Below, one piece after another: positions 1,553-20,559 of a DNA stretch of 64,000 bases. Every line of letters starts with the position of its first letter. Within the stretch, counting starts at the first letter, position 1. Below the pieces are notes generated by a model. That model saw nothing but the letters and a program-made list of their open reading frames with translations, did no database searches and was not told where the DNA came from. The stretch is from Macrostomum hystrix (lineage: Eukaryota > Animalia > Platyhelminthes), in the NCBI GenBank assembly GCA_950097015.1, contig CATNEN010000007.1, positions 4,960,001 to 5,024,000 on the forward strand. Reading direction: 5' to 3'. A program made the position numbers and the translations under genes.

Positions 1553-1850
1553 AAGCGAATTGACGAATGTAAGAAGCTAGAGTGGATGAAATGAGTTTTG
1601 TTTTTTAGCTTCGAGTCGTTACCACCTACCACTCTATCTCTCTACCACTCCAAATAGGTAGGTTTTTACCATAGACGATGAAGTGAATGAAGATGAAGAC
1701 GACGAAGACGCACAAGCTTGTCAAACTTGTACGATTCTTGGCTGAAATCTACAAGCAGTGTTGTGAAACACTTTTGCTTGTAGCTTGTAGCTTGTAGCTA
1801 TTAAACTTGTAGCTTGTAGCTTGTAACTTGTAAATTATATGAAACACCCC

Positions 1851-2097
1851 CCAGGGCATTGACTTTGTATTGGCAAAAGTCTAAATTCTACTTTTTAGAT
1901 CTAAGAAATCCAGGGCTTCGACTTTTTATTGCTAAAAGTCCAAGCTCCACTTTTTAAGTCTAAGAAATCCAGGGCTTAGACTTTGTATTGCCAAAAGTCT
2001 AAATTCTCCTTTTTAAGTCTAAGAAATCCAGGGCTTTGACTTTGAATTGCTAAAAGTCTAAATTCAACTTTTTAGATCTAAGAAATCCAGGGCTTTA
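1851..2097 (+). repeat. 59-bp satellite, ~4 copies
   Basis: TAAGAAATCC at 1902, 1961, 2020, 2079 (period 59). Confidence 0.9.
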
Positions 2098-3326
2098 CAG
2101 AAAGTCAATGCTTCCTACAGCCTCCTCGGGCCGATTCGAGACAGTTCCCGAGGTCCCCGGCAACTGATTTTGGTGTCGTTCGAAAGGCCTGGAGATGCTC
2201 TATAGATTCCGGTTGAGTCCCCCGAGATTGTCTATTGGGTGCCAACTTGGGCTCTGAGTGGCTACCTAACTTGTCTAAGAGCAATATTAAGTCGAAAATT
2301 TCCCATGTCGAAATTTCCGTCATTGGCGGGCAATGTTGGAAATGACATTTCTCGACTAGAGGTTGACGCCCTGAGTCTAGAGGCGCCAGTCCGGCGCTTC
2401 TAGATGGTCGGGAAAGAAAGTTGTGGCTCTTTTTAGAATTCCATGACTTTGACTTTCAGAAGTCAAAGGCCTGGAGTCAAAGGTTTGACTTTGTCAAACT
2501 TTGACTTTGACATTGTAATCGGTCAATGTCTTTGACTTTACAGAAAGTCAATGCTTCCTACAGCCTCCTCGGGCCGATTCGAGACAGTTCCCGAGGTCCC
2601 CGGCAACTGATTTTGGTGTCGTTCGAAAGGCCTGGAGATGCTCTATAGATTCCGGTTGAGTCCCCCGAGATTGTCTATTGGGTGCCAACTTGGGCTCTGA
2701 GTGGCTACCTAACTTGTCTAAGAGCAATATTAAGTCGAAAATTTCCCATGTCGAAATTTCCGTCATTGGCGGGCAATGTTGGAAATGACATTTCTCGACT
2801 AGAGGTTGACGCCCTGAGTCTAGAGGCGCCAGTCCGGCGCTTCTAGATGGTCGGGAAAGAAAGTTGTGGCTCTTTTTAGAATTCCATGACTTTGACTTTC
2901 AGAAGTCAAAGGCCTGGAGTCAAAGGTTTGACTTTGTCAAACTTTGACTTTGACATTGTAATCGGTCAATGTCTTTGACTTTACAGAAAGTCAATGCTTC
3001 CTACAGCCTCCTCGGGCCGATTCGAGACAGTTCCCGAGGTCCCCGGCAACTGATTTTGGTGTCGTTCGAAAGGCCTGGAGATGCTCTATAGATTCCGGTT
3101 GAGTCCCCCCAGATTGTCTATTGGGTGCCAACTTGGGCTCTGAGCGGCTACCTAACTTGTCTAAGAGCAATATTAAGTCGAAAATTTCCCATGTCGAAAT
3201 TTCCGTCATTGGCGGGCAATGTTGGAAATGACATTTCTCGACTAGAGGTTGACGCCCTGAGTCTAGAGGCGCCAGTCAGGCGCCTCTAGATGGTCGGGAC
3301 AGAAAGTTGTGGCTCTTTTTAGAATT
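2097..3326. repeat. 443-bp tandem repeat, ~2.8 near-identical copies
   Basis: ACAGAAAGTCAATG at 2097, 2540, 2983; third copy truncated at ~3326. Confidence 0.95.
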
Positions 3327-3352
3327 TTCTCGACGTCTGCCGGCAACTGATT

Positions 3353-4382
3353 GGCAGACGGAGTCCACCAGTCGCTGAAAGGCCTGGGCAGCGTTCTTGA
3401 GGCCGAATGGCATTCGCAGGAACTCGAAGAGGCCAAATGGGGTGGTGACGGCAGTCTTGGGCACGTCGGCTGCGGCCACGGGCACCTGGTGGTAGCCGCG
3501 GACGAGGTCGATCTTGGAGAAAACCGAGCAGCCGGCCAGGCGGGCCGAGAAGTCCTGGATGTGCGGCACTGGGTAGCGGTCGGGCACCGTGGCGTCGTTG
3601 AGCCGCCTGAAGTCGCCGCAGGGCCGCCACCCGCCCGAGGCCTTGGGCACCATGTGCAGCGGCGAGGACCACGGGCTGTTGGACCGGCACGCGATGCCGA
3701 GCTGCTCCAGGAGCCGGAACTCCTCCTTGGCCACCGCCAGCTTGTCCGGCGGCAGGCGGCGAGGGCGGGCGTGGACCGGCGGGCCCTGAGTCGGGATGTG
3801 GTGCTCGACCCCGTGGCGCGGCTCCGCTCGCTGGAAGCTGGGCTCGGTGAGGGCGGGGAACTCGGCCAGCAGCTGGCTGTACGGGTCCGCAGCGGCGGCT
3901 GCGGCGAGCTGCAGTCCGGGCCCCGTGCCGTCCAGCAGGTGCACGCTGGCGAATGAGCGGGCGTCCAGGAGTCACCGGTGCGGCAGGTCCACCAGCAGGC
4001 CGTGGTGTCGCAGGAAGTCGGCGCCGATCAGCGGGCGGGAGACCTCGGCCAGGATGAACGGCCACGAGCAGCGCCGGATTCCGAGGTCGAGCGTGAGCTG
4101 GCGGGTGCCGAAGGTGCGAATGAGGCTGCCGTTGGCTGCAAAGAGCGGCGAACCGGGCGTGTGCAGGCGAGCATCCGAGCCATCGACGGGGAAAATGCTG
4201 ACCTCGGCGCCGGTGTCGACCAGGAAGCGCCGGCCCGTCTGCACATCGGGGATGAGGAGCAGGCTGCTGCTGTTGCCGGCCGCCGAGCTGTTCACTGACG
4301 GCCGGCCTGCCCGTTTCCCTGGAAGCTGCATGGAGATTCGCAGCGGCGTGCCTTGGCTCCGAAACGGCGATGGAAGTAGCAC
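3353..4382 (-). pseudogene. Gypsy Pol (aspartic protease + partial RT)
   Basis: FLVDTGAEVSIFP protease; in-frame TGA at 3972-3974; RT motifs [50 protein letters not shown]; truncated near 3353. Confidence 0.9.
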
Positions 4383-4990
4383 AGGCCGTCGTCAGGGTGA
4401 TGTTGTTGCTGCTTAGACGGCCGACTGCCGCCCCGACGGGTCGCCGAAACCACCGGCTGGGTGGGCTCCGCTGCCGGCTGCTGGACGGAGGCCGCGGCGA
4501 GCTGCGGCCGGCTGGCCCACAGCTTGTCGGCGAGCTGCGCTGCTTCCCGCGGGTCGCTGAAGTCGGCGGTCGCCATTGCCATTCTGACCTCAGTGGGCAG
4601 CTGCTGGCTGAACAGCTCTTCGAAGAGCATGCAGGGCCAGTGGTCTCCAAGCAGGGCGAGCATCTCGTCCATCAACTCCGTGGGACGCCTGTCGCCGAGG
4701 CCGGACATGTTGAGCAGGCGGCTGGCCCGCTGTTGTCGGGACAGCTCAAAGGTGCCGAGCAGTCGCTCCTTCAGCCTCTTGTACTTTTCTTCCCTCGGCG
4801 GATTCTCCAGCGCGTCGATGAGCCGCTCGGCGGTCTGCTGATCGAGCGCCGCGATGACGTGGCTGTACTTCGTGTCGTCATCGGAGATCTTCCGCAGAGC
4901 GAATTGAGCTTCGGCCTGAACAAACCAAATACGAGGTTGAGATGCCCAAAACGTGGGCAGTTTGAGTGCAACGGCTGACTCCGTAGTCAT
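4292..4990 (-). CDS. Gypsy Gag
   Basis: LKLPTFWASQPRIWFVQAEAQF N-terminus; C-X2-H-X9-C-X3-C motif CYFHRRFGAKARRCESPC. Confidence 0.88.
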   Translation of the reverse strand: MTTESAVALKLPTFWASQPRIWFVQAEAQFALRKISDDDTKYSHVIAALDQQTAERLIDALENPPREEKYKRLKERLLGTFELSRQQRASRLLNMSGLGDRRPTELMDEMLALLGDHWPCMLFEELFSQQLPTEVRMAMATADFSDPREAAQLADKLWASRPQLAAASVQQPAAEPTQPVVSATRRGGSRPSKQQQHHPDDGLCYFHRRFGAKARRCESPCSFQGNGQAGRQ

Positions 4991-5011
4991 TCCTCAGCTA
5001 CGGCTAGGGTT

Positions 5012-5024
5012 GTCGGGCTCACCA
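5012..5024 (-). promoter_or_regulatory. Primer-binding site, tRNA-Trp-like
   Basis: Minus strand TGGTGAGCCCGAC vs complement of tRNA-Trp 3' end TGGTGACCCCGAC (1 mismatch), just upstream of gag. Confidence 0.7.
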
Positions 5025-5264
5025 ATTTAGCGACTCGCAAAATGAAATGGCGCGAGAGAAGGTCAACTTTTATTTTTTACAATCGCATATAAATACTGCG
5101 CGACAGAGAGGCATGGGGAGGTGCGCATAGTCCGTGCCAGACCCTGCGGCTTAGCGCGCCGGCCGTCTGGGTGCACCCACCCCCCGGGCAGGGTGAGTCA
5201 GGCCGATTGAGTGCAGGTGCACTGCCCGCGCCAGCAGCGTGCTGGTCTGGCCGCCACAGTATTA

Positions 5265-5966
5265 TACATTTTTGCAATTGAATTCGCCGAAACTGCAAAA
5301 CAATTCCCCATAGAAGCCAATGTGGTCTAAAAATAGTAAGCCCATAGAAATTAAGCTAAAAGTCGAGATTGAATTCGCCGAAATTTCATTTGAATTCGCG
5401 TTACGCGCCAATGGCTTGTATTCATTTGACAGGACAAAAAGCTTCGAAGGGGAAACAATCAAAGAGGAAACAAAGTTTGCGAACTGATGTACGAGTAGAA
5501 TGAAGTCAACCGAACGATCAAAGAAAAGAGCAATCAATTATGCCAAAATGTCTTCATGATTCAGGCAGCGATTCAAGTAGGTTGCCGTGTGATTAGCCCA
5601 CTGCAAGCACTTCTGCTGTGTGATCTGCTGTAGGGCGACCGTCACCTCACGTCTCAGAATTCCCATTCTCCAGGTGTGAAATGTGATGCCAAGGTTTGCT
5701 GCTGCAGCCGTATTGAGCAGTTCCGCACGAACTGGCATGGCAAGTCCTCTCAGCATTTTGAAAACAGGATAGAGAAGGACTGCCGAATTTAAATTGCTGC
5801 GATTTTAGCAACATATAGACACCTCACCAGTGCGAATTCAAATGCAATTTCGGCGAATTCAATCTCGACTTTTAGCTTAATTTCTATGGGCTTACTATTT
5901 TTAGACCACATTGGCTTCTATGGGGAATTGTTTTGCAGTTTCGGCGAATTCAATTGCAAAAAGGTA
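5265..5966. mobile_element. Non-autonomous IS630/Tc1-like element with ~135-bp TIRs
   Basis: ~5265-5397 is the reverse complement of ~5835-5966; TA on both flanks; internal minus ORF 5538-5756 (WRMGILRREVTVALQQITQQKCLQWANHTATYLNRCL) resembles the C-terminus of the transposase at 10844-11978. Confidence 0.75.
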
Positions 5967-6429
5967 TATTATTTCTGCTGTGGTTGATCATGAGACGTGT
6001 AACTGAGAAGGTTGTTTTGTTTGTTTGCATAGTTTGTATTTAAGTGTAACTAGAGCGATGGAGGGTACAGTACGGGATGTCTATGGGATGAGCGAATGCT
6101 GAGAGAAGTACAAGCGTAAAATTAAAGTGATAATACACTGCAGTGTGGAATTCTATGGGAATCGGAATGCTAAGTGAGCTGGAGTGCAGCATTGCCTAGC
6201 ATTTTAACGATCATTGTCTGCAGTTTTCTATGCAAGACAATGCATTCTCTGCAGGTTTTCCAGATACGATTTACCGTTATATTTTTGCAAAGACGCACGG
6301 CATAAGTTTAACACATGTAGTTGAACGAGCAGTGGGCAATGCAATAGAAACATGTAGAAAAGCAAGCAGTCACGTCGAAGAACATCGTCAGTTTAATATT
6401 CACTTATTCGAAGAAGAAGTCGATTATAT

Positions 6430-6915
6430 TGGCGCGGCGAAAGCAGCTCCCGAAGCAACTAAGTTGGTCCTGCGTTTCACTACAATATTCAGGTAGCGTT
6501 GTATTCCAGGACGAATACAAACCAGCGACGAGGGTGAATAGGCGCGGCCTTCCTTGCTCTTCAGTCGAAAATAATAGATGCGCAAATATTAATTCAGTGT
6601 GGCGTCACTAACGACACGACTCTTCGAAAAGGCAACAAGCTTTTGTCCATGCTCTTCCATTTGCTTACGACTGCTCGCAGGAAGGCCGGCAATTTCAGCG
6701 TCGTCTAGATCTTTGAGTTCTTGATTGAATTCGGCAGCCAGGTCGGCAATAGATTCATCTTCGCACAATGAGCTTTCCATGTAGGTGATGAAGTCGGCAA
6801 CCACTTCATCCACACGACAGTCGTTCCCGGAGAGCTCGGAGCTTGTTAAGCCATTAAGACTGTTGACAGACAGATTCCGATAATTCATTAAGTGCACAAC
6901 CGGTGGTGTCTTCAT
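6430..6915 (-). pseudogene. Crypton-like YR copy 1, N-terminal fragment
   Basis: After in-frame TAA (6589-6591) reads YLRIYYFRLKSKEGRAYSPSSLVCIRPGIQRYL, aligning with LRFFYGTLRKKDGGLYAPATLVCIRAAIHRHF of the intact copy; catalytic half missing. Confidence 0.75.
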
Positions 6916-6994
6916 TTTGAATATTCTCTCTCTGCTATATGGAATGAAACGCTGACGCTAAAATGTAGCTTCTAATCTGCAGGACTAAATTGTA

Positions 6995-8283
6995 ACGGGT
7001 GTCCCAAAAAGCCTACACAGCTGCCATAGACAATCTTTTGCTTTAAAAAATCTTAAGGAGCGTAGTCTCTGAGATGGTGTGTGGTCAAATGCCAGTTTAT
7101 TAGAAAAATCGCTATTGATTTTTTGAGCTTGTAAGTGTACGCTAGCTTCTCTGCTAAGCTTTGTCATAGACGGAGGCCATAGACAATCTTTTGCGTAAGA
7201 AAAATGACAGAGCATGCATAGACTCTGAGACTGATCTAACGTTACAATTTCCCATCATGGATCATAGCAGCTGCACGATGCAGCTGCAGTTCAGAAACCG
7301 TCAATGGCCTGCAAGTTTGAAGAAGAAACTCGTCTTCGGATCATCCAGTGCTACTACCGAAATGAAGAGAGCGTCACAGCTGCTTCGAGACAGTTCAACA
7401 CTTGGCGAAATGCTCAACCAAACGCTGCTGCCATTCCTCCGCACAAAGAAGAATGTTCATCAACTGGTGCAAAAGTTTCTGACAAAAAAGAACTTACAGT
7501 TGTCACATAAAGGACACAGTGGCAGTCGCAGACCTCGCAGTGTCAGGACAGAAGAGCGCGTTTTTGACGTGATGAGAGAGTTGGAGGGTGAGAGAAAATC
7601 TCTGAGACAAGTTTCACGAGACCTCGAAATGTCAACTTCGACTGTGCAGCGAATCGCGAGACAGGATCTTCACCTGCATGCATATCGTGCAGAGAAGAAG
7701 CACGGACTGCTACCAAGCGACTTTGTGCAGCGAGCAGAACTGTGTCATCTAGTGCTGAACACTCTTGAGAACACCAATCAGCCAATTGTGTTTGTTGATG
7801 AAGCCACATTTCGAACAGACGGCACGGTCAATCTCACGAATGACCAGTTCTGGTTCACACGTGGCACAGCTCCGAACATCCCGCCAGCCGAAGCACGTCA
7901 AAATGCGCAAAGAGCAACAGTATTGCTGCAGTGTCACGAGACTGGCTTGGGGGCCCTATTTTTTTCCTGGAACTGTCAACTCTAGGGCTTATCAGGATGC
8001 ATTGCAGCTTTTTCTGACTCCGGATCTTCATGCGGCTGGCATCCGAAACGTTTGGTTTGTGCAAGATGGTGCTACTGCGCACACTTCCATCTCGACTCGC
8101 CAGTTTCTTAGAGACGCTTTCGGTGCCGATAGAGCGATTAGCAAGTTTTTTAACACACCTTGGCCAGCAAGGTCACCTGAATCGAATCCGGTCGACTACT
8201 TTCTTTGGGGCTTTGCTCGTGAGCTCGTCATCTCGCCTACCGGCGCTCGCAAAACAATAGTTGTCACGCACTGGGGCCGCTGA
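6995..8283 (+). mobile_element. Tc1/mariner element, DD41D (rosa)-like, frameshifted and 3'-truncated transposase (7304-8283)
   Basis: Three frames give HTH region, IVFVDEATF, WFVQDGATAHT...WPARSPESNPVDYFLWG (42 residues counted between 2nd and 3rd D); putative left end TA|ACGGGTGTCCCAAAA at ~6995; no right TIR seen. Confidence 0.8.
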
Positions 8284-8618
8284 TTATTTATACATTGTAG
8301 TACGATAAAAGCGGTCTTTCGCGTCCCTGGGATTTCCCTAGGGAAATCCAAAAAATAGGTTAAACTCAAAATGTCTATGGTCGTTAAGCTATAATATTGA
8401 AAACAGAGCTGTATTTAGAAGAAGTATAAACAACTAAACAAATTACATTATTTCTAACAAGTAAAACTGGTTATTTTCCGTAAATGTCATGCAAAATATC
8501 AAAATGTCACTTATGATAAACGTTGAATGTGCAGCCGGTGAACGTACCACTGAAGCCGCCACTAGAACTAGAACTGCAAGTTGACAGATTGGTGGTTGAA
8601 GCTAAACTTACTTTATTT

Positions 8619-9225
8619 TCACATCCAGCCAGACTTAATGCATCCGAAACGCATGCCAGTTGGGGACTCCTTCTTCTTTGAGTATCTTATGTACCGCTGG
8701 GTTGACACAACCGAACGATGTCCCGTCACATGGCCGATGTCTTCCAGCGAAAAACCGGCGTTGTGCAGCTCCGTCACGACCGTTGCTCTGATGCAATGAG
8801 GCGCATACTTTCTAGACAGTCCAGCCTTCTCAGATATTGTCTGCATCATTGATCCCAGCGTATTGTGTCCAACCGGCTGCTTGGCAAAATACCACGAGTC
8901 TGCGTTAGGCTTAGCCCTCGGCCGAATGAAGACGATGCTGTTCACGACACCTTCTCGGTTCTTAGCATTCGCGATCGTTTCCATGTAGTCTTTGAAGCAG
9001 CCCACAGGGCAGTCAGATAAGCCGGTAGAAACCATCAGCACCTGTTTAGTATTCTTTGCAGCATTTTCCAAGTGTCCTCCATCAGTCTTTGTAGCCATCG
9101 GCCGCAACTTGATAGCCTCTCGCCCAGATGCAGTGATGATCTTTTCGAACAACTCAACTGTTAGGCGTCGAAACCACTCTCTTGCACGCAGCCCAAAATG
9201 AGTCATCATATTGTAATAGAACTCA
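8619..9225 (-). pseudogene. Crypton-like YR copy 2b, C-terminal catalytic half
   Basis: HFGLRAREW, CPVGCF, YAPHCIRAT (HxxR), VTGHRS, QRY; N-terminal half absent. Confidence 0.85.
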
Positions 9226-9259
9226 TGCTGTAACTGTAACTGTAACTAACTGTAACTGT

Positions 9260-10203
9260 AACTCATGCGAAACGTTGACACACGGCTTCGGGAAAAGCGA
9301 CTCGACGCGCAGGTCGTTTAGGCACTGCAGGTACATCTTTAATGCAGCAACGGGACAATTTCGATTTTCGGAATCCGAATACATGCGTGCCTGCTTAGCA
9401 TCATGGAATTCGGTCTTCTTCAGAGATGCCTTCGAATTCTTACTTAGAAGGTCATGATTCAGTGCGACATAGTCACGGCCTTCAGAATCTTCTAAAAACA
9501 CGAAACTCTCCTTAGTCAGCGTTGGTAGAGTTTCTAATTCACGCAGTCCAAAATAATAAATTAGATGAAACATGACCTCCTGCTGTAGTATGACACCATT
9601 TGACCTATCAAAATAGCCCATGATTTTCTGTAGGTAATTAATTTCAATTGCAGCAAATCTGTCTCGGGATTTTGGTTGATTGGCTAGCTTGTACTTGTGA
9701 ACCATCGATACTAACATCTGATTGGCATTCGCGAAAGCAATGTCCGCAATAATATTAATATCCGGACGGTTCAGACAGAAGAAGCGATGCAGTCCGGCTC
9801 GAGTGCAGATAAGACTTGCTGGAGCATAGTACTGCTCGTCCTTTGTTCGCAGTCTCGAATAGAAGAAGCGTAAATAGTTAGCCAAAATAGACTTTGGAAT
9901 TTGTAACAGGTCAGTTGACAGCTTGCTTGCTTCCAAAAATCTCTTGAAGCGGTTCACATTTTCCTCCATCTGCCGTGCAGAAGAATCGGGCAGGCCATCT
10001 CGCTCAAGCTGATTCAACTCCTGCATCACGTCCTCCGGAACGTCTTGAATCTCCTCAGACTCCATCTTGCGCGCGAATTCCTCGCTTAGTTCATCCAAAT
10101 ACCGACTGTTCGATTCTGATGATATCCAAGCTAACTCTTCGGTTGACATACCGGAGACAATTTCTCCAGGCATATTGGAAAAAATAATTAAATGGTTGAT
10201 CAT
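9260..10203 (-). pseudogene. Crypton-like YR copy 2a, N-terminal two thirds
   Basis: LRFFYSRLRTKDEQYYAPASLICTRAGLHRFF, YYFGLRELE, CPVAALKMY; ends at LFPKP before HxxR/H/Y. Confidence 0.85.
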
Positions 10204-10459
10204 GGTTGGACCGTCAAAAAAGAGCTAAATCCTGGCAGAGTTAAAATTACAGCGCTTCTCTAGAAGCCGGGGCAAGTTAAATTTTTTTTTAAAGAAATAT
10301 TTGTCTATGGTACAGAGTGGGGGCTTTGCCCCCTTCTTGTGTGGGCTTCGCCCCCAAACACCCAGATTTCACCCACGCTCCTTCTTTTTGTTGTCTATGG
10401 TAAACAGCGTCTATAATACAACATGGAGCCCGGAATTTTCCTACATAATGACAATAATA

Positions 10460-12195
10460 TAGCCTTTTGCGTCCGACTTAAGTTTATGGGCATTTCACTT
10501 GATCCACAGTGGCAGAATTCCACACTCAAGGGCAACTGCTTTCCCAGTCTATGGCTCAAACGGGTGCCTGGCAGGCGATTGACTTAATCTTCGGGGCATG
10601 AACTTAGTCCATTTTTGCTCTCTAGTAGACCGAAAGCTTTTAAGCAGGCCCTAGTGGGCAGCGTTGCGACAAGGACCAAGTGATTTATTGATGTGATGCC
10701 AGGAGGCTTACCAAAAATGAATGCAAACGAGAAAAGAATCGGGAACGTAGGCAAGAAAGGTTCAGCAACGGGAACACAGGCGGCAATAATTAACAAAATT
10801 TAAATACAAGCGGGAAAACTTCATCGAACTCAGCGACTGAAGGTCACAAAATAGGCTGGCCGGCAATGCAGGCTGGAAGGTGGCGCAGTGAGTGACGGTA
10901 CCATCCGCCGCACTTCGCAGCGTGACCTCCACTGTCGCCTCCTCAGCAATCCTTTGCATGACCAGAATTCGCCACTGGTACAGCGGCGTCTGTGGGGGCG
11001 GGCTGTTCAGCTCACGCTGCACCTCATGCTGCGCCAGTGCGCGCTTGATTGCCGCCTTCACGCATGAGTGCGCCTCCTCGACGGGGTTCAGAAACGGCGA
11101 ATATGGCGGCAGGACCTTAACGCTCCAAACTGCTCCGGCAGTGTGACTCCGTTGTGAAATCGAGCGCCGTCCATCACAATGCAAAACCGTTCAGCGTCGC
11201 CCACATCACCGCGATTATTGACAGCATGCATCAGCTCCTCGACGAAGGTCTGAAACATGGCCGCTGTCATCGTCTCGGAAACCATCTTGTGATACACGAG
11301 GCCAAGGCTTGGGGAGATTGCCTGCACGATGTTCAGTTGAGCTCCGCGCTGTGTAACAACCACGCGCCGAACTCGCTGGCCTCGTCTACTGCGTCCTTGG
11401 GATCGGCGTGTCCACATGTTGAAACCCGTCTCGTCGACGAATAGCAAGTGCTGCTCGGGAGGAATGCCGATCAACCAGTGAGCATATTCTTGCCTCCGAG
11501 CCACGTTCTCTGGCGAGTTGCGCGCTGCCGGAACATCGGCTTCTCGCCCCAGACTTTTCAGCGTGATCAGCTGCTTGTCCAGCGCCCTACTGATGGTGGA
11601 TTCGCATACTTGTAGATTAAACCGATCCTGCAGCTGGTTCCTCATCTCCGCCAGTGTCAGAAGTGGATTTTCGACTATTTTGTCCACCAGGTACTGAACA
11701 TGGACCGCTCCGAGCTTCGGTTCTCTGCCACCGCCATGAGGGAGACGATTGCGACGTCCAGTGACTTCGTACCGCCTTTTAATTGACATGACTGTCTTGA
11801 CGTTAACCTTCATCCATCGCGCGATATCGACCGGCCGCTCACCTCTGTCCAGTGCGTCTACGACAAGGCTGTGCTTCTCATCGCTCATCATTGACCACGT
11901 CCGAGCTTGTGTGCCGTCACCCTGCTCATCAGGGGCAGTTTCATAGCTAGCGTTGCTGCCTTCGTCTTCCGAGCTCATACTGTTGCCGTTGCTCTTTAGG
12001 CTAGAGCGCGAAGCGCAGCTTTCGGTCTACTAGAGAGCAAAAATGGACTAAGTTCATGCCCCGAAGATTAAGTCAATCGCCTGCCAGCCACCCGTTTGAG
12101 CCATAGACTGGGAAAGCAGTTGCCCTTGAGTGTGGAATTCTGCCACTGTGGATCAAGTGAAATGCCCATAAACTTAAGTCACACGCAAAATGCTA
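10460..12195 (-). mobile_element. IS630/Tc1-like transposon with ~175-bp TIRs
   Basis: ~10460-10637 is the near-perfect reverse complement of ~12018-12195; TA on both flanks; transposase inside. Confidence 0.9.
10844..11978 (-). pseudogene. IS630/Tc1 DDE transposase with two frameshifts
   Basis: HTH N-terminus; LLFVDETGFN, IVMDGARFH, VLPPYSPFLNPVEE; frameshifts near 11125 and 10920; restored end KCGGWYRHSLRHLPACIAGQPIL* (stop 10844-10846). Confidence 0.88.
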
Positions 12196-12569
12196 TATAA
12201 ACATTGCTTTTTGCAAGGCATCAATGTAGAATTTAGTTCGGGCGCTTACGCGCCCTCAAAATTCTACATTGTAACACGCAATGCGGTGCATTATAAGGCT
12301 TCAGCAACGTATTATGGTATAAACGATCACTCAGCGATAATGGCATGTCTATGGCACAAACTGCGCCAATCCGCCATGAGCCAGAAGCTGACAAAATTTG
12401 GACGCTTATATTTGTTTCTTTTAATTATCAATTAAAGTATGTAGGAAAAACGGTGCGCAGAAACGGGCAACAGTTTTGGGTGCAGCAAGTTTAGTTCGAT
12501 TGAATAAGGAAAATGTATTTCAGTTTACCAGCTGCGGTGTGACAATCAGTCCTGCTTTCCGACCGTTTG

Positions 12570-14162
12570 TTAGAAGTGACATCCCGTGAAAGTACCACCG
12601 CGTATGATGATGACTCGTGGAACGGTGGCCGCATCATGCAGCGACGTCTTCTGCATCAGCAGCTCCTGAACCAGCACCTCGTCGGTCTCGTGCTCCGCGT
12701 CGATTGCAGTGGATAGGCGGAGCGTCTGGCTGCAAGCAGCATTCGTAACAGAGGATCTCAGCTGCGGTGCACGCAGTTTGCCGGCACGGACGCAGCAGTC
12801 GACGTCCTCATTTCCGGCGCTCCCAATGCAATCACTGCTAGTTGTTGTTGCGGTTGATGACCCAGTTCCGAGTGTGAACTGAAGTGCCTCAGACAACTTC
12901 ACCATGTCGGCATTTCTTTTCCTGCCGAATCGTATGTACCGTTCGGTGGTCCTCGAGCTGACATGGCCTGTGACGCGGGCGATCTCTTCTACTCTGAAGC
13001 CTCTGTTATGCAACTCAGTGGCAACTGTAGCACGAATGCAGTGTGCAGTATACACCCGGCTGAGACTCGCTGCTTGCGAAATGTCCTGCATTAGTGTGCT
13101 GAGCTTTCCAACTCCGAGAGGGCACTTCACGTAGTACCAATCGTTGCCCAGCTTAGCAATCTTTGGCTTGTAAAACAGACCGCGGGATTCGACGTTTTGA
13201 GTACACTTCGACTCATCCACCTTCTCCAGAAACAGTTTAAATCCCTCGAACAGACAACCGGGTGCGCCCGTCTGAGCCATGAGAGGCTGCTTGGTGTTGC
13301 TAGCCGACCCCGGCTTCAGCGAACCTTGTCGGTTTTTGGACTCCATCGGGTTCAACGCGAAGGCCTGCTTACCATTCTCGACATTCACCACGACAAACGA
13401 GTCCCGATCCAGTGTACGTATCCATTCCCGTAGACCGAAGTGGTACATCATGTTGAAGTATGCCTCGTGCATCAGACGAACAGGATCCATACGATTGAAG
13501 TATTGTCCTAGCAAACGTAAATCTGCCTCTTCTATGGCGGCATACTGTTTCGACTCGCCGCCTTCCTTCACAAATAATGCAGCCATTACCTTCAACATGT
13601 CGTTCGCACGCGTGAAGGCAATATCACCGATTATATCAATTGACCGTGTGCGCTTCAGGCAGCGCTAAAGTCTGGCGCGAAAACATGCCAGGCTTGCCGG
13701 CGCATACAGACCACCGTCATCTTTGCGCAGTAGGCCATAAAAGATCCGTAGGTACTTGCCCAGTTGTTCAGTATTGACGCATGCCAGGTCGCACTCAATA
13801 TTCAGTTTCCTCATGCAGACGTTGAACCTCTTGACGGCAGAGTTCTCGTGGACAACAGCAGTGCGATTGCGATTCTGTAGCTCCACCTGATCCAATCCAG
13901 ACAGTACCGTCTCCGTGGCGTCATCATCAGGCAGTTCAGGCAATCCAGACAATAGCGCCTCCGTGACGTCATCCACAGGCAGTTCAGGCAGTTCGTCTGG
14001 CGGCTCATTAAATAGCCGCTGGTTGGCAATGCGCTCCACAATTTGGTCCACAGTGAGACCGACCACGTCCCTTTCTCGCAGGTCTAGTAATCCGGTTGGA
14101 AATGCTGCCATTTCCTCCATTTCAGCCAGAGCCAAGATAGAAGCAGACAAACTTAGTTTCAA
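12570..14162 (-). pseudogene. Crypton-like YR copy 3, full length with one premature TAG
   Basis: ORFs 13665-14162 and 12570-13598 are in the same frame, separated by TAG (13665-13667); HFGLRE, YTAHCIRAT, VTGH, ERY motifs present. Confidence 0.88.
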
Positions 14163-14607
14163 AATAAATTTCGCTCCCTGCTCCTAACCCCCTCCCTCTT
14201 CGCACGATGACTCGCTTGCCCACTCTTAGCCATAGACAAATCAACCCCACAATAATGACGGTCGACAAGCAACGGCGTTATAGGGGGAGTTGATTTGTCT
14301 ATGGCCTGAAGCCTTATAATGCTTTTACCGGTTGGCTGCCTCGCAGTTAATGGCGATTACGCGCCTCGATCGACCGCCATTAACTTGCTCGGCACCCAAC
14401 TGGTAAAGTTCCATTAAACGTTAGACAGCGTGCGTGTAACGCAAGTAGTCTATGGTAGAAACTCAACCGCGCTAAGCGTTTTCATCATGCGTGTAACGCA
14501 TTTAGCGTGCGTCTAACGCTACAAGCACAAAAACAGTTTATTTCAAAAGTGGAACAGATGAAGCATACAACGTTAACAAGTTTTGAGCAAAAGTGTAGTG
14601 CCCATTT

Positions 14608-16173
14608 CTACCCATGAAAATTGCAATTGTAGACAGGCCCATGGAAATGGTACACGACAGATGGCCGGCGACTCTCTGGTGAATCAGCATTGTCCACTTC
14701 ATTTATATTTAGTGACTGGCTCACCATCGTTGCTGCCTCGATCGTAGCCGCCTGCTGTACTGCTTGCACTACCACTCCAGTGGAAGGCGTCGTCCCCATG
14801 ACGGCGGTTGCGGCTTGTCGGGCTTGAATGACTTGCTGTCCACTATGAACTGCTGGTCGCTTCTCCGGACCATGTAGAGCGCTGGACAGACTTTTGGACA
14901 TGCTGCGCATTTCGGCGTCTTCGTCGAATCGGAGATACCTGTCCACAGTCCTAGTCTGCTTGTGGCCTGTGACTTTGCAAATGTCTGGCACGCTGTATCC
15001 AGCGTTCGCCAACTCCTTCACTACTGTCGAACGGATGCAGTGCGCAGTGTACGTCTTGCTGAGACTGGCCTTCTTGGAAATTGTTGTCATCATCTGTCCC
15101 AACGTGTTAACACCAACAGGCTTGCTAGCGTAGTACCACGACGAGGATTGCCAACTGGTAAGCTTCGGCTGTAGAAAAAATGCGGCTGGTTTTGGGGTAC
15201 CAGAGCTGCTACCAGGAATCGACTCGTCGCGCTTCCTCATGTAGAGCTTAAGGGCTTCCACTGGGCATATGCTCCGGTCCGGCAATGCGCTCATGATAGC
15301 CTCCTTCACATCTTCGCAGGAATCACGGGTCAGATCATTTCCGACGTTCTTTATTTTGCCAGCGACGAAGTGTACCACCTCACAACCATCGGAGTCAATC
15401 TCAAACCGGAAGGACTCTTCACTAAGTGCTCGGCACCACTCCCGTCCTCTGTTTCCGAAATAGTACACGATGTTGTAAAACACCTCGTGCTGCAGGGACT
15501 CAGGCGAGCTCCGATCGAAGTAGCGAGAAAGACGCTCCAGATCTGTCGTCTCAATGGCCTGATAGTGTCCTGGGCGGCCTCCAGCGGCAATGAATGTACG
15601 TGCCATCGCCTTCAAAGTGCGGTTTGATTGAAGGAACTCGTCTCCAACTAGAATGTTGATGCGACGTGTGGTCATAAAATGGCGATGGATTGCAGCCCGA
15701 ATGCAAACTAGTGTAGCTGGCGCGTAGAGTCCACCATCCTTCTTTCTCAGCGTTCCATAAAAGAAGCGCAAGATGCGGTCTAGCTCGTTAGGCCATGCAA
15801 CCGACAGATCCTGCGGCAGTGACGAGTGAACACCCAAGAAGCGTCGCAAGCGTTGCATCCAATAATCCGTAGCTCGAACAACACTCTTGCATGTAGCATT
15901 GCCCTCCATCTCCGACACAATCTGCTCCAATTCCTCCAGCTGGGTCTCCTCCGTTGGTAGCTTCGAAAACAGAGCATCGAGAAAATCCACATCGGGACCA
16001 GCGGTACCATCATCAAGCAGCTTGTTCACCTCCAACTGGTCCAGTGCTTGGTCGATCTGTTGCTCAGTGAGCCCTGAGATGGCTCCATCAGGAAACTGAG
16101 CAAAATCAATATAGCGAACTCTCTTTGCAGGGCTATCTTCTTCCGACATATTTATTCTTTGGGGAGTGTCCAA
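14608..16173 (-). CDS. Crypton-like tyrosine recombinase, intact (copy 4; first ATG at 16149, 513 aa)
   Basis: Uninterrupted ORF with YFGNRGREW (R), YTAHCIRST (HxxR), VTGHK (H), DRYL (Y); C-terminal YNCNF motif paralleling TGCHF in copy 3. Confidence 0.9.
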   Translation of the reverse strand: MDTPQRINMSEEDSPAKRVRYIDFAQFPDGAISGLTEQQIDQALDQLEVNKLLDDGTAGPDVDFLDALFSKLPTEETQLEELEQIVSEMEGNATCKSVVRATDYWMQRLRRFLGVHSSLPQDLSVAWPNELDRILRFFYGTLRKKDGGLYAPATLVCIRAAIHRHFMTTRRINILVGDEFLQSNRTLKAMARTFIAAGGRPGHYQAIETTDLERLSRYFDRSSPESLQHEVFYNIVYYFGNRGREWCRALSEESFRFEIDSDGCEVVHFVAGKIKNVGNDLTRDSCEDVKEAIMSALPDRSICPVEALKLYMRKRDESIPGSSSGTPKPAAFFLQPKLTSWQSSSWYYASKPVGVNTLGQMMTTISKKASLSKTYTAHCIRSTVVKELANAGYSVPDICKVTGHKQTRTVDRYLRFDEDAEMRSMSKSLSSALHGPEKRPAVHSGQQVIQARQAATAVMGTTPSTGVVVQAVQQAATIEAATMVSQSLNINEVDNADSPESRRPSVVYHFHGPVYNCNFHG

Positions 16174-16188
16174 TGTGATAAGTACACA

Positions 16189-16202
16189 GGCTTATATAAG
16201 CC
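16189..16202 (-). promoter_or_regulatory. Palindromic TATA box candidate for YR copy 4
   Basis: GGCTTATATAAGCC (14-bp palindrome, TATATAA on both strands) ~45 bp upstream of ATG 16149. Confidence 0.35.
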
Positions 16203-16629
16203 CCACAGGCTTGAGCGTGCATTTAACGCAAGTGTCTATGGCCCAGCTTGCATATTACAATGCAACTAATATATCGCCGCTTTGAACTTTAACGGTAAAG
16301 CACTCAGCGGCGATATATTAATCCTACATTGATGCCTGCAAAAAGCAATGTTAATGTTATAATGCCCTGAATATCTATAAGGCTCACAACATGCTCTATA
16401 AGGGATAAACACGCTGTTTTCCGGGCACTATTTACTTAGTACCTTCGGCTCTCGGGCCCTAAAAAAATAGTGCCCGGAAAAGCGTGCTTTATCTTCTACA
16501 TACTCGTATTAGCAACAGTATATAAAAAGCAAGTAGCAAACTGACATGTTTTATTTTATATGTTAATTTTATAGATTATTAAAACATCATAATAGCGATC
16601 AACGATCAGTCAACACACACGAATAAAAG

Positions 16630-17235
16630 TCAAATTTCGGAAAACTCAAGTCCTCGAATACAGAAGTAGTACAAAACAGCGAAGGGTACTACATGTTGTA
16701 GATGCAATGGAGTGCTTCGATCAAAATAGGTTCGCAGGCGAGCTAGATCCATAGACTCATCCATGTCGATAGCCACGAAGGGTTTGCTCCTGCCACCTTC
16801 ACTCACAAACTTCTTGCCAAGGTTCTTCAGATTCGCAACAAAAAACTCCTCTGTAATGATGTTGAATGCCCGATTTCTTAAAAAAGCGATAGAGACCTGC
16901 TCGAATGCACAGCAAGCTCGCTAGCGAGTATAAACCACCGTTGGCCTTATTCAAAATCCCATAGCAAAGGCGTAGCACACACGCCAGCGCAGAGCGTTCA
17001 CACGTCGCGATGTCAGCTTAAATGGATCCATTCGCGTCGATGAACTGGCAACGTACTCTCTTGATACTCAGAACTGGCAACGCAACACTCCCTATCCAGC
17101 TCGTCAACCGACTGTTCCCAATGCGAATAATTGATCAACATCCTCGAGAGAAAGTGCTTCAGCAGCTTTCTCAAAGCCGAAATCATCCATGTACTTCTCG
17201 ATCTAGCGCCAGTAAGTCCGCATATAGGAGGATAA
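16630..17235 (-). pseudogene. Crypton-like YR copy 5, degenerate (not in ORF track)
   Basis: Manual translation: PICGLT..IEKYMDD; LRLCYGILNKANGGLYSLASLLCIRAGLYRFF; (frameshift) FVSEGGRSKPFVAID..DLARLRTYFDRSTPLHLQHVVPFAVLYYFCIRGLE*, collinear with copy 4. Confidence 0.8.
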
Positions 17236-17309
17236 GTCTGCTGCTAGGAGGACATTGGTTCTCTGTTGGGGGGGGCATTGGTTCTCTGCTGCTTAGGGGC
17301 AGGGGGCAT

Positions 17310-17573
17310 TGGAGAGATGACGCACGGCTTTTGAGTGCAGCAACGACCATAGACACTCCTAGGCACTCCTAGACACTCCTAGTGCCTAGGTCGTTGCTGC
17401 ACTCAAAAGCCGTGCGTCATCTCTCCATTGGTTCTCTGCTAGGGGCAGGGGGCATTGGAGAGATGACGCACGGCTTTTGAGTGCAGCAACGACCATAGAC
17501 ACTCCTAGGCACTCCTAGACACTCCTAGTGCCTAGGTCGTTGCTGCACTCAAAAGCCGTGCGTCATCTCTCCA
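17310..17573. repeat. Two tandem foldback cassettes (39-bp perfect inverted arms, 40-nt loop)
   Basis: Arms 17310-17348/17389-17427 and 17456-17494/17535-17573; an extra right arm at ~18518-18561. Confidence 0.9.
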
Positions 17574-18340
17574 TTGGTTCTCTGCTAGGGGGCATTGGTT
17601 CTCTGCTGCTGGGGGCAGTTCTCTTCTGCTGGGGCAGTTCTCTTCTGCTGGGGGCAGGGGGCATTGGTTCTCTGCTGCTGGGGGGCAGTTCTCTTCTGCT
17701 GGGGAGCAGGGGGCATTGCTTCTCTGCTGCTGGCTCTTCCATTGGTTGTCTTCTGCTGGGGGGGGGCAGAGGGCATTGGTTCTCCGCTGCTGGGGGGGCA
17801 GGGGGAATTGGTCGTCTTCTGCTGGGCAGCAGGGGTCATTGGTTCTCTTCTGCTGGGGTGTGCAGGGGGCATTGGTTCTCCGCTGCTGGGGGCATTGGTT
17901 CTCCGCTGCTGGGGGCAGTTCTCTTCTTCTGGGGGGCAGGGAGCATTGGTTGTCTTCTGCTGTGTAGGGCAGGGAGCATTAGTTCTCTTCTGCTGGGTGG
18001 GGCAGGGGGCATTGGTTCTCTTCTGCTGGGGTGTGCAGGGGGCATTGGCTCTCCGCTGTTGGGGGCAGGAGGCATTGGTTCTCCGCTGCTGGGGGCAGGG
18101 GGCATTGGTTCTCTTCTGCTGGGGTGTGCAGGGGGCATTGGTTCTCCGCTGCTGGGGGCAGGGGGCATTGGTTCTCTGCTGCTGGGAGACACTGGTTCTC
18201 TTCTGCTGGGGGCAGTGGGCATTGGTTCTCTTCTGCTTGGGGGGGGGCAGGAAGCATTGGTACTAACCGTTTTGAGGGGAGAATAAGTTTTCTGCTGCTA
18301 GGAGGACATTGGTTTTTTTGTTGCTGGTTTTTTGCTGCTA

Positions 18341-18381
<41 letters not shown>

Positions 18382-18474
18382 AATGGTTTAGCAAGGTCCT
18401 CGGATTGGTGCCGACCTGATGGAAACATTAGGTCGGATGCTGAGAAGAAGATCAAACTTGAACATTTAGAGGAT

Positions 18475-18507
<33 letters not shown>
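18341..18507 (+). rRNA. 18S rRNA 3'-end fragment (V9/helix 44 region), non-functional insertion
   Basis: CCCTGCCCTTTGTACACACCGCCCGTCGCTACTACCGATTGAATGG...GTAAAAGTCGTAACAAGGTTTCCGTAGGTGAAC; no flanking rDNA. Confidence 0.92.
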
Positions 18508-20559
18508 GCGCACTCGTGCCTAGGTCGTTGCTGCACTCAAAAGCCGCGCGTCATCTCTCCATTGGCTCTCTTCTGCTGGGTGGGGCAGGGGGCAGTGGTT
18601 TTCTTCTGCTGGGGGGACAGGGGAATTGTTTGTCTTCTGCTGTGGGCACGGGGCATTGTTTCTCTGCTGCTGGCTCTTCCATTGGTTCTCTTCTGCTGGG
18701 GGGGGGGCAGGGGGCAGTGGTTCTCTTCTGCTGGGGGGACAGGGGGCATTCGAGTTGTCTTCTGCTGTGGGCACGGGGCATTGGTTCTCTTCTGCTGGGG
18801 GGAGGGGGCATTGGTTCCCTTCTGCTGGGGGGGCATTGGTTCCCTTCTGCTGGGGGGGCATTGGTTCTCTTCTGCTGGGGTGTGCAGGGGGCATTGGTTC
18901 TCCGCTGTTGGGGGCAGGAGGCATTGGTTCTCCGCTGCTGGGAGACACTGGTTCTCTTCTGCTGGGGGCAGTGGGCATTGGTTCTCTTCTGCTTGGGGGC
19001 AGTGGGCATTGGTTCTCTTCTGCTGGGGGCAGTGGGCATTGGTTCTCTTCTGCTGGGGGCAGTGGGCATTGGTTCTCTTCTGCTTGGGGGGGGGCAGCGA
19101 GCATTGGTACTACCGTTTTGAGGGGAGAAAATGTTTTCTGCTGCTAGGAGGACATTGGTTTTTTTGCTGCTGGGGGCGCATATGTGGTAGTAAGAGTGCA
19201 ATTATAGCAATATTAGCATAAATGTGGTTAAAACACGCTTCATGAGGGTTTTGATTATATCATGAATTTTCGCTAAAATTGTTCGTTTAATTCCCTAGGC
19301 CTAAACTTAACTTAAGCAAGCGATGCTATATGAATCAGCTACCATTGACCAATTCATGGCAGTTCATTGCTCGCAAAAGTACTCGCAATAGATAAATGAA
19401 AGCAAGAAGCGGACAATTCTGAAGTATTAGTGTTTCTGGTTCAAGTGGGCCCATTCAGGCGCACTTATCCTGAAATAATGCCAAATACGTTGAACATGTT
19501 TAATCGAAGTCAAAAGGCGAAGCATTTCTTGATTTGATTTTTTCCAATAAAATTACTCGTAGAAATAAGTAAAAACAATTTTTTAACTTGCGCAAATAAC
19601 TGGCGTGTTAATTTCAATAATTGCAAATCAGTGGGCCGAATGTGCGCGAAAAACACGGAATAAGGATGTTTGTTAGCACCAAACTGACAATAAATTGATA
19701 TGTACCTTAATGGTAGATTGGCAGAAACTGGCACCAGCAGTAGTTACTCTGTAACTGGGAATATTGTCTTAAAAGAAATTTCGGACAATAAATCAATACG
19801 CACTCCATTAAAAAAATGGCTACGAGGCACTCGTAAAATCAAAGAAAGACTCATTGGCGATATATTCATTGCGGAAGAAAGCTACTCAACTTGCATTAGA
19901 AGGAAAAGTAATCTCGGAGATGGAAAGATAATTGAATATGATAAAATCTGGAATCATTAGTGCGATAGAAACCTAGATGCGGTGATTAGCAGCACAGTTT
20001 CTTATGAATAAATCAGACAAAATGAATAAGCTCTAAAACGACAACCAGCAATCACCAGAGCAATTGTATAGCAACAGGAAATCAGAAAGACGTCAAGTAG
20101 GACAAATAAACAGCGGAGTTGTCTATGGTCCAAAAAGAGGTGAAAAATATGATCAGGAGAATAAAAAAACATGCGATCAGATCTCAATAACGGCAGAAAC
20201 AAAAATTGTTGATCAGGTTAGCCCCTCCGTCTAACTAATTTTCTGGGAAATATTTCTGATCTCTACTGTAAAATTGTTCCAGGGGAGGGTGGCATCTCTG
20301 GACCAAGCACCAAGGTCCCAAATTGGAATCCGAAATTGTTTGAAATGCTCAATGCAATGACCTATTGGTCAGCTCCGCATCTAGACAGAATTTAATTGCT
20401 CGACGTTTTTAATAACGCAAGCTGGCACTTGCAAAATTCGAATTAGAATCAAATAAATACGCAAAATGACTACGATCAATTTCGTCATGACTCAATTAAT
20501 AATGGCTCGATTTAGCCGGATTCTAGCTATTCGATTTGCATAAAAAAATCTGCGTAAAG

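Follow-up and report, generated by a model that had tools for sequence, protein, structure and literature searches.

We conclude that the cluster of tyrosine recombinase (YR) genes in the window (the whole 64-kb stretch of DNA analysed here) is probably a nest of CryptonA-type, DUF3504-class, DNA transposons of at least five lineages, together with non-autonomous derivatives, with crossover at a terminal YAATG and with a subterminal motif, GTCTATGG. The first-pass annotation had proposed that different families integrate serially at GTCTATGG, building an integron-like array of cassettes. Serial integration survives, in that divergent, co-oriented Crypton-type YR elements have entered the DNA of earlier residents site-specifically; what does not survive is GTCTATGG as the seam. 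The motif lies just inside the element ends, and the region is therefore not an integron-like cassette array, so that a tempting eukaryotic-integron reading has to be removed as wrong. Copies outside the window are known from short assembled contigs and runs (L, X and P codes below), rather than from a whole genome. The features are collected in Table 1.

Table 1. Positions, strands and characteristics of the features discussed in the text
Feature	Position	Strand	Remarks
Leftmost motif	1669..1676	-	125 nt upstream of Myb/SANT-like ORF (812-1543, minus)
D, N-terminal YR fragment	6457..6915	-	tblastn
Two gene-sense motifs upstream of D (7024, 7177)	7013..7184	-	in 19-nt direct repeats 153 bp apart
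Tc1/mariner-like DDE gene, frameshifted	7191..8283	+	between motifs 7177(-) and 8373(+)
Motif, A2 3' side	8373..8380	+	possible terminus at 8294, 79-nt tail
Cassette A, chimera	8619..10203	-	A2 3' half (8619-9209) and A1 5' two-thirds (9223-10203)
S1, two direct motifs 90 bp apart	10303..10400	+	fold weak, z -1.1
Tc1-type DDE transposon	10457..12198	-	182-bp terminal inverted repeats (I1)
Hairpin H, left arm and loop, target split by C	12200..12263		inverted repeats I13, I20; reconstruction
C unit	12264..16331	-	1942 nt after subtracting B unit
B unit, complete Crypton	12289..14416	-	2128 nt, nested in 3' tail of C unit
B 3' subterminal motif	12347..12354	+	58 nt from terminus
B YR gene, pseudogene in window copy	12570..14162	-	
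B inverted motif copy	14230..14237	-	109 nt upstream of B start codon
B 5' subterminal motif	14297..14304	+	20-bp-stem hairpin with inverted copy 14230-14237 (I18, z -8.5)
Short cassette S3	14305..14447		composite of B and C ends; fold z -4.7
C 3' subterminal motif	14448..14455	+	58 nt from terminus with B unit subtracted
C YR gene, intact, 513 aa	14608..16151	-	ATG at 16149-16151
C 5' subterminal motif	16234..16241	+	82 nt upstream of ATG; 85 nt from 5' terminus
Hairpin H, right arm	16332..16355		inverted repeats; reconstruction
E, internal YR fragment, frameshifted	16642..17065	-	motif 16749 within coding sequence
Rightmost motif	20121..20128	+	16 nt (TGTCTATGGTCCAAAA) in common with 5' motif region of P0025 lineage

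Exact GTCTATGG occurs 18 times in the whole 64 kb, as against 1.46 expected and a maximum of 5 in 100 shuffles, and an exact recount agreed in position and strand with the first-pass annotation at every site that it had listed. All 18 lie within positions 1669-20121. The remaining 43 kb are empty of the motif. The shorter TCTATGG was found 24 times within the same interval and once outside it in the window; one-mismatch variants of GTCTATGG were enriched only about twofold. The layout of the motifs was also as described. Re-measurement gave long cassettes of 1930, 1950 and 1786 bp and short cassettes of 90, about 210 (Tc1 excluded) and 151 bp, and the matched extensions of the direct repeats were found: TGTCTATGGT twice, TGTCTATGGC twice and a 28-29 nt repeat at 14426/16213.

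Six diverged Crypton-like YR genes or fragments had been reported on the minus strand. tblastn bore this out, placing all six pieces (D, A2, A1, B, C and E) on that strand with pairwise protein identities of 30-43%. No similarity between cassettes was detected at the DNA level; the cassettes are therefore not segmental duplicates, an origin that the protein divergence likewise rules out. Pfam Phage_integrase matched A2, B and C, while DUF3504 (PF12012) matched C above the cut-off and A1 and A2 more weakly; PF12012 is also among the precomputed domains of the relatives P0001-P0004. The tyrosine-recombinase catalytic signature (R, HxxR, H/W, Y) is present, with R, HxxR, GH and RY invariant throughout A2, B and C. 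The HxxR, GH and RY of the C protein align to XerA, as does the YR family profile to the XerA catalytic segment; in a search of solved structures XerA and Int were reached by the profile only, a single sequence giving no match. The B unit (2.1 kb) and C unit (1.9 kb) have one ORF each, and we found in them no reverse transcriptase, LTRs, split direct repeats of the DIRS/Ngaro kind or DDE transposase; an RVT_1 ORF at 3276-3944 is a separate element. The family was visible only in an exhaustive protein search, which gave 12,252 matches at E <= 0.001; word-indexed searches gave four relatives. A scan of metagenome contigs with the YR profile yielded no relative, and the sole match there to a 20-mer from the C 3' end was an unrelated bacterial-looking contig.

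Two units, B and C, could be delimited in the window. The borders of B are CATTA at 12289-12293 and 14412-14416 (TAATG in gene sense). Contig L008, from another run and another context, matches B from TAATG to TAATG at 97-99% identity and has unlike flanks; its ends are as close to B as its body is, the tail agreeing at 98.3%, the ORF at 98.9% and the 5' terminal part at 99.1%. The joint of the empty site, 12288>14412, with CATTA in common, was present in three runs (X1, X2 and X4), and contigs of X2 and X4 begin at 12289. The B gene of the window is interrupted by a TAG stop at 13665-13667 and has a 6-nt deletion at 13428, in the GLRGRE box. Position 13665 is G in four of four runs, giving Tyr instead of the stop, the six extra letters are present in X1 and X2, and P0005 is an intact 525-aa relative. 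The B 5' motif lies 107 nt inside the 5' terminus. S3, previously counted as a non-coding hairpin cassette in its own right, joins the B 5' terminal hairpin (14306-14411) and CATTA to the final 31 nt of the C 3' tail (14417-14447), so that it consists of abutting B and C ends.

C is bordered by a direct repeat, CTACATTG, at 12264-12271 and 16324-16331. Deleting 12272-16331 in silico restores a hairpin, H, with a 46-bp stem (z -11.7) and a dG of -66.1; the native flanks reach -43.6 and -37.7. Contigs of X2, at 12267 and 16332, and a contig of X4, at 12264, part from the window at the CATTG of the C border. The joining core is thus TAATG for B, on the evidence of L008 and the empty site, and CAATG for C, on that of the rebuilt hairpin and the contig breaks; in both of the two elements that can be tested, the boundaries are unrelated to GTCTATGG. 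The C YR region spans 14608-16173 by tblastn, with a TATA-like sequence upstream of the ATG at about 16189-16199, and its product is 98% identical to P0001, a public contig product whose DNA (L001) is 99.1% identical. The C 5' motif and 14426-14455 belong to one subterminal direct repeat of 28-29 nt (D13). Gene-less derivatives of C (joints 14583>16230 and 14552>16200) lack the TATA-like sequence and keep both motifs. The C derivative in X1 reached a depth of 712, compared with 244-390 for full copies, and terminal regions were 15-30x deeper than YR bodies. In X13, B is present and C absent; B and C move independently. Both families are young and have intact members.

B and C are built to a common plan, which recurs in a third lineage. 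In gene sense, a unit begins with YAATG and a 5' hairpin; CCATAGAC, the promoter with the single YR gene, and a second CCATAGAC follow, and a short tail leads to the closing YAATG. The terminal hairpin measures 85-120 nt and the tail about 53-62 nt, both CCATAGAC have the same orientation, and the start codon is often preceded, at about 80-110 nt, by an inverted GTCTATGG partner. In B and C alike GTCTATGG is 58 nt inside the 3' terminus, with a spacing of 85-107 nt at the 5' terminus, and the borders are YAATG microhomologies of 5-8 bp. In the third lineage, P0025 (contigs L012-L015, four samples), a 2077-nt unit runs from CAATG to CAATG, and the contigs start or stop at most one letter from CAATG. 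The 5' hairpin of this unit is strong, an exact GTCTATGG precedes the ATG by 102 nt, and subterminal direct repeats agreeing at 30 of 44 positions contain CCACAGAC and ACATAGAC. A fourth lineage, L011 (P0022), has an inverted motif pair ahead of the gene, and L006 and L016, from other data sets, have CCATAGAT near their 3' ends. Among the distant contigs L002-L006 and L009, a search for subterminal repeats gave AT-rich chance matches only, and in L009 there is no motif within 168 nt upstream. From the common end plan it follows that each short hairpin cassette is either a pair of element ends that abut or a miniature derivative with two motifs.

The rule that CATTR stands 58 nt outside the motif was applied to every motif site and fails at A1, D, E, S1 and 7024/7177, so these units are undelimited. 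Cassette A, formerly taken for a single YR cassette, is chimeric: some 100 homologous alignment columns are occupied by both A1 and A2, with about 27% identity, their nearest relatives differ (P0016 at 50% for A2; P0046 and P0010 at 48-52% for A1), and the junction crosses a (GTAACT)n tract. Likeness to the C terminus suggests CATTGTAG at 8294 as a possible terminus of A2, and S1 may be either a miniature body or a doubled A1 5' motif. D departs from the other units in how the motif is oriented to the gene, both copies (7024 and 7177) being gene-sense, and a fold test of 7013-7184 detected nothing (z 0.0). The Tc1 transposon arrived later than the array DNA. Both of its terminal inverted repeats contain the motif (10547, plus; 12101, minus), which is also found upstream of the Tc1, mariner-like and Myb-like genes, places not expected of a recombination site that serves Cryptons alone. 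Inverted repeats were searched for around the Tc1/mariner-like gene at 7191-8283 and none was found.

All five mapped insertions (5/5) lie in the terminal DNA of Cryptons. In the window B sits in the C tail and C in hairpin H; the B copy of L008 lies in sequence matching B's own hairpin stem, with runs of 10 and 9 nt; and copies of C in X2 and X4 are 2-6 nt from a CCATAGAC. In L014 a unit adjoins the ...GTGTTACAATG end of another, and in this contig, which is from another sample, two units stand head to tail with one short core in common. The ends are short direct repeats that match the target, as in CryptonA (4-6 bp), and mark site-specific insertion, not duplication of a random target: TAATG for B at two independent sites, CAATG for C in the window and in X2, and CAATG for P0025. 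Arrays seem to grow by self-targeting, with crossover at YAATG. The terminal YAATG of a unit would recombine conservatively with a matching YAATG in the target, which would be a hairpin or tail at the end of a resident Crypton; this is reportedly the integration model put forward for Cryptons by Goodwin in 2003. Because the targets are in resident ends, elements would pile into each other in one orientation. As to GTCTATGG, we favour its reading as a putative cis-acting recombination site, to which recombinase or a cofactor may bind as at the arm-type sites of lambda attP. In a circular form, two motifs would flank a junction region of about 150-190 bp. Joints of units closed back on themselves were absent from the contig data, a type of data that drops rare forms.

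A more far-reaching proposal, which we advance tentatively, is that GTCTATGG serves many divergent CryptonA lineages as an arm-type landing signal, making resident ends into preferred integration pads and orienting the incomers. The recombinase or a host factor would bind GTCTATGG on the hairpinned ends of residents, co-oriented arrays of several families would arise through cross-family self-targeting at the common YAATG, and other transposons, such as Tc1, would have acquired the same word. If true, array growth of this kind would parallel, in a eukaryote, the serial integration known from dif or att sites.

We think it rather unlikely that GTCTATGG is mainly a promoter or transcription factor site used by several types of transposon, its clustering being that of packed small transposon genes. 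Seven start codons, from four types of gene (YR genes A1, B, C and D; Tc1; mariner-like; Myb-like), do have the motif 72-125 nt upstream, with the gene-sense copies tightly at 108-125 nt, and placement is alike (79-108 nt) in L008, L011 and L012-L015. However, a second copy stands at a constant 58 nt from the 3' terminus, a place that calls for no promoter, and L006 and L016 have CCATAGAT close to the 3' end. Moreover, the C derivatives that have lost both gene and TATA-like sequence retain the two motifs and outnumber full copies, and the other 43 kb of the window lack GTCTATGG. Promoter and recombination-site roles are nevertheless compatible.

More doubtful still is a passive graveyard, in which elements insert at any YAATG under relaxed selection in a repeat-rich gap and the density of the motif reflects two to three copies per element. 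Most copies are indeed broken (the A chimera, the D and E fragments, the stop codon in B), and other transposons, satellites and a retroelement fragment share the same 20 kb. Yet a target of 5 nt should turn up about once in 500 bp, and the mapped insertions are without exception in Crypton termini; six of six YR pieces are co-oriented, and the youth of the B and C families, with their intact members, also tells against it.

That GTCTATGG is itself the crossover core, at which families insert and excise bodies in an integron- or dif/IMEX-like array, is highly improbable: direct motif repeats with matched extensions of 9-12 nt do flank each YR body, and CryptonS elements mostly end in TATGG (PMC3212892), but the B and C bodies are accompanied, wherever they were seen, by the same terminal regions with equal identity, the joints 12354>14305 and 14455>16242 are absent among the contig joints listed, the abundant derivatives retain two motifs, and the mappable insertions have a YAATG seam. 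Among the copies examined we saw no joints at the motif, no single-motif solos and no bodies between foreign termini. In X2 a single loose end stops precisely at the edge of a motif (16369), as a crossover core would have it and against the reading that we favour. A mobile hairpin platform with bodies swapped at the motif was also considered, and was rejected, since divergence is equal in the body and the terminal regions and no form with a single motif was among those listed.

The locus and its relatives provide a concrete end architecture for CryptonA: YAATG crossover, a terminal hairpin and subterminal CCATAGAC repeats. A survey of animal Cryptons (Kojima and Jurka, 2011) reported no terminal repeats (PMC3212892), and the Glomhoppers, fungal relatives of CryptonA described in 2026, have no detectable flanking repeats (PMC13465315); relative to both, the definition of the ends of animal Cryptons is new. 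This architecture would account for the co-oriented arrays of these elements in this genome, predicts specific circle junctions, and would benefit the annotation of CryptonA elements, including the numerous miniature forms derived from them. The same architecture suggests a eukaryotic site-specific recombinase that is compact and whose substrate is defined.

The elements resemble known CryptonA/DUF3504 Cryptons in having a single ORF, a YR of about 450-525 aa with Phage_integrase and DUF3504 matches, no reverse transcriptase or long terminal repeats, and non-autonomous derivatives more numerous than autonomous copies; they differ in that their ends are resolved. That Cryptons use a short motif at the terminus which agrees with the target is established (PMC9977147; PMC3212892). 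In CryptonF-1_cRei of Chlamydomonas, a terminal CACCG recombines with a near-identical target CAYCG (PMC9977147), much as the TAATG and CAATG units described here share 5-8 nt between terminus and target. That element, however, belongs to another Crypton group and inserts near genes, not into Cryptons, and a subterminal motif and terminal hairpin are unreported there (PMC9977147). The TATGG in which most CryptonS elements of oomycetes and diatoms end (PMC3212892) is contained in GTCTATGG; it is terminal in CryptonS, whereas in the present units 58-112 nt separate it from the termini, and the YR group is another one.

As in bacterial integrons, the units of the window are co-oriented, a short word recurs between them and the spacers hold imperfect palindromes that fold. 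In contrast to integrons, we found no platform integrase with attI and no promoter for promoterless cargo; each long unit encodes its own recombinase, C with a TATA-like sequence ahead of the ATG, and crossover does not take place at the repeated word, since B and C end at YAATG and not at a conserved recombination-site core. The likeness to dif/IMEX arrays is that successive elements enter sites regenerated by residents, although the elements here encode their own recombinase and no host chromosome-resolution site was identified. With the arm-type sites of lambda attP the resemblance is one of layout, the crossover 5-mer of the predicted circular form being flanked by the motif at about -58 and at +85 to +112 nt; binding to the motif, unlike that to the lambda sites, is putative.

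Six pieces of Crypton-type tyrosine-recombinase (YR) genes were found in the window by tblastn with local open reading frames (ORFs) as queries. Their products are 30–43% identical to one another, and no similarity between the pieces was found at the DNA level. Pfam matches to Phage_integrase and DUF3504 place them in the CryptonA class, and the catalytic motifs HxxR, GH and RY, which align to XerA, are kept. The family has very many members in public data, with 12,252 cluster representatives at E ≤ 0.001, and the nearest representative differs for every local piece. As A1 and A2 overlap in homologous columns, with ∼27% identity, and have differing nearest representatives, ‘cassette A’ is a chimera of two lineages. 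It joins the 5′ two-thirds of one Crypton lineage to the 3′ half of another (8619–10203) across a (GTAACT)n-like tract at ∼9225–9260, probably as the outcome of a deletion that spanned two units in head-to-tail order.

Tyrosine-recombinase gene pieces in the window
Piece	Position	Strand	Description
D	6457–6915	minus	YR fragment (tblastn)
A2	8619–9209	minus	YR piece (tblastn)
A1	9223–10203	minus	YR piece (tblastn)
B	12570–14162	minus	YR piece (tblastn)
C	14608–16173	minus	YR piece (tblastn)
E	16642–17065	minus	YR fragment (tblastn)

The 8-mer GTCTATGG (the motif), which the first-pass annotation took as the crossover core of an integron-like cassette array, occurs 18 times in the window, as compared with 1.46 expected. 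All 18 sites lie within 1669–20121 and none in the other 43 kb of the window. One-mismatch variants are hardly enriched. The annotated motif spacings and extended repeats around the YR bodies proved right when checked against the sequence. The rightmost motif (20115–20135) has 16 letters in common with the sequence around the 5′ motif of the P0025 lineage described below; no YR gene follows it, and it could be what is left of a plus-strand unit at the array edge.

Contigs of four public sequencing runs were compared with 12199–17230 of the window. In three runs 12288 is joined to 14412, with the five letters CATTA in common; this joint is the site in its empty form, without the 2123 bp of the inserted B unit. 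Position 12289 is also a contig start in runs X2 and X4. L008, a 2219-nt contig from another run, encodes P0005 (525 aa), an intact relative of B. The contig's match to the window begins and ends at TAATG (14416 down to 12289), and both flanks differ. Its 3′ tail is 98.3% identical to the window, the ORF 98.9% and the 5′ terminal region 99.1%; the similarity of these values indicates that the terminal regions and body of B moved as one. The two copies of GTCTATGGC, earlier read as the borders of B, are both internal: the 3′ end is 58 nt away from one, and the 5′ end 107 nt away from the other.

The flanks of the C body are alike in the window, X2 and X4 well past the motifs, and the similarity between the X2 and X4 contigs and the window ends at 12264/12267 on the left and at 16332 on the right. 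In the window, the direct repeat CTACATTG stands at both limits. Removal of 12272–16331 in silico joins the arms of a near-perfect hairpin, H, with a 46-bp stem (dG −66.1, z −11.7; native flanks −43.6 and −37.7); the C unit is thus an insertion into this hairpin at CATTG. With the B unit taken out, the C unit is 1942 nt long. It contains CCATAGAC twice, at position 91 and at 58 nt from the 3′ end, which gives it the tail length of B.

The B and C units share one plan. In gene sense, each starts with YAATG (TAATG in B, CAATG in C), a hairpin region of 85–107 nt (fold z −4.7 and −5.4) and CCATAGAC, continues with a 5′ region before the ATG, the YR gene, a 3′ UTR and a second CCATAGAC, and ends with a 53-nt tail and YAATG. 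C has a TATA-like sequence upstream of the ATG; B has an extra inverted GTCTATGG, which pairs with the 5′ motif in a hairpin whose stem is 20 bp long (z −8.5). The evidence from outside the window comes from short contigs only. In a third lineage, P0025 (42% identical to B; four contigs from four samples), the plan is repeated in a unit of 2077 nt running from CAATG to CAATG, with a strong 5′ terminal hairpin, subterminal direct repeats that match at 30 of 44 positions and include CCACAGAC and ACATAGAC, and an exact GTCTATGG 102 nt upstream of the ATG. P0025 contigs start or end no more than one letter from CAATG, which is where an assembly graph would be expected to break at the edge of a repeat. 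In a fourth lineage (P0022, contig L011) an inverted motif pair precedes the gene, and CCATAGAT lies near the 3′ ends of the more distant relatives on L006 and L016.

In the large run X13 B is present and C was not found, indicating that B and C act as independent units. The window copy of C has an intact ORF (513 aa); it is probably immobile, because its 3′ tail is interrupted by the B unit. Its gene has six in-frame letters fewer (14920–14924) than the public-run copies. The window copy of B has lost 6 nt of the GLRGRE box at 13428 and carries a stop codon (13665–13667), defects that are both absent from copies in other runs; the box is catalytic.

The short hairpin ‘cassette’ S3 (14297–14448) consists of the 5′ terminal hairpin of B, CATTA and the final 31 nt of the C 3′ tail. 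In run X1 the depth of terminal regions is 15–30 times that of YR bodies, and deletion derivatives of both B and C were found in the runs. Those of C have lost the ORF and TATA-like sequence and kept both motifs; in X1 the C derivative reaches a depth of 712, as compared with 244–390 for full copies. Short segments such as 10303–10393 and 7024–7177, each with two direct motifs about a body of 82–134 nt, fit miniature elements of this kind.

All mappable insertions lie within the terminal DNA of another Crypton. The target of B was the C tail in the window and, in L008, a sequence with two stretches, of 10 and 9 nt, that match the hairpin stem of B itself; that of C was the hairpin H in the window and, in X2 and X4, a site 2–6 nt from a CCATAGAC. 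In a further sample, contig L014 (1–105) has a P0025-type unit whose first letters are the very CAATG at which its neighbour ends, ...GTGTTACAATG; the two are head to tail with one crossover CAATG in common, and the neighbour's ending is that of the C unit in the window. Since every mapped insertion is in such DNA, arrays seem to be built up by insertion of new units at sites that their residents provide. In this respect the earlier proposal of serial insertion still stands, with the crossover moved from GTCTATGG to YAATG.

As to the motif itself, we favour a cis-acting role in recombination, on four grounds: its position is fixed at both ends of units, it occurs at 3′ ends, gene-less derivatives keep it, and it is conserved between lineages that are otherwise unlike in their non-coding DNA. 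Alternatively, and possibly alongside such a role, it may be a promoter element, as it stands 72–125 nt upstream of seven start codons, including those of a Myb-like gene, a mariner-like gene and a Tc1. The motif also lies within both 182-bp inverted repeats of the Tc1, which would not be expected of a recombination site specific to Cryptons. This Tc1-type transposon (10457–12198; repeats 98% complementary, DDE gene frameshifted) carries in each repeat GTTTATGG, a near copy of the motif, ∼25 nt in, and an exact GTCTATGG ∼90 nt in; they may serve as repeated sites bound by its own transposase, or else be a shared signal.

The Myb-like gene is a minus-strand ORF (812–1543) in which PF13873, a Myb/SANT-like domain, is weakly matched (E 0.0026). 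A motif lies 125 nt upstream of its ATG (1669–1676), and a near-motif, GTCTATGA (140–147), lies downstream in the same orientation, so that it resembles the YR bodies in its bracketing without being a YR gene. At 17294–17585, each copy of a 146-bp tandem unit is a perfect hairpin (42-bp stem, z −16.8), and the motif lies where stem and loop meet; a third copy of one arm lies ∼1 kb further on (18516–18571), all within a G-rich minisatellite of ∼30-bp units (17560–19120). A 712-bp element (5260–5971) has 140-bp inverted arms (98%), each with two copies of TTCTATGG, the motif with one letter changed. Further repeats are a 59-bp tandem repeat (1843–2092, and likewise at the window start, 1–72), the adjacent 443-bp satellite (2093–3300; three copies, 99–100% identical, with a 72-aa ORF inside) and a minus-strand retroelement fragment (3276–4990) comprising an RVT_1 reverse transcriptase ORF and a DUF7041 gag-like ORF.

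Terminal repeats were not reported for animal Cryptons in a published survey (PMC3212892), nor flanking repeats for the fungal CryptonA relatives (PMC13465315). The TATGG termini given for some Cryptons in the first-pass annotation hold for CryptonS (PMC3212892). Crossover at YAATG corresponds to the Goodwin model of integration, the same as has been seen for CryptonF-1_cRei of Chlamydomonas (PMC9977147).
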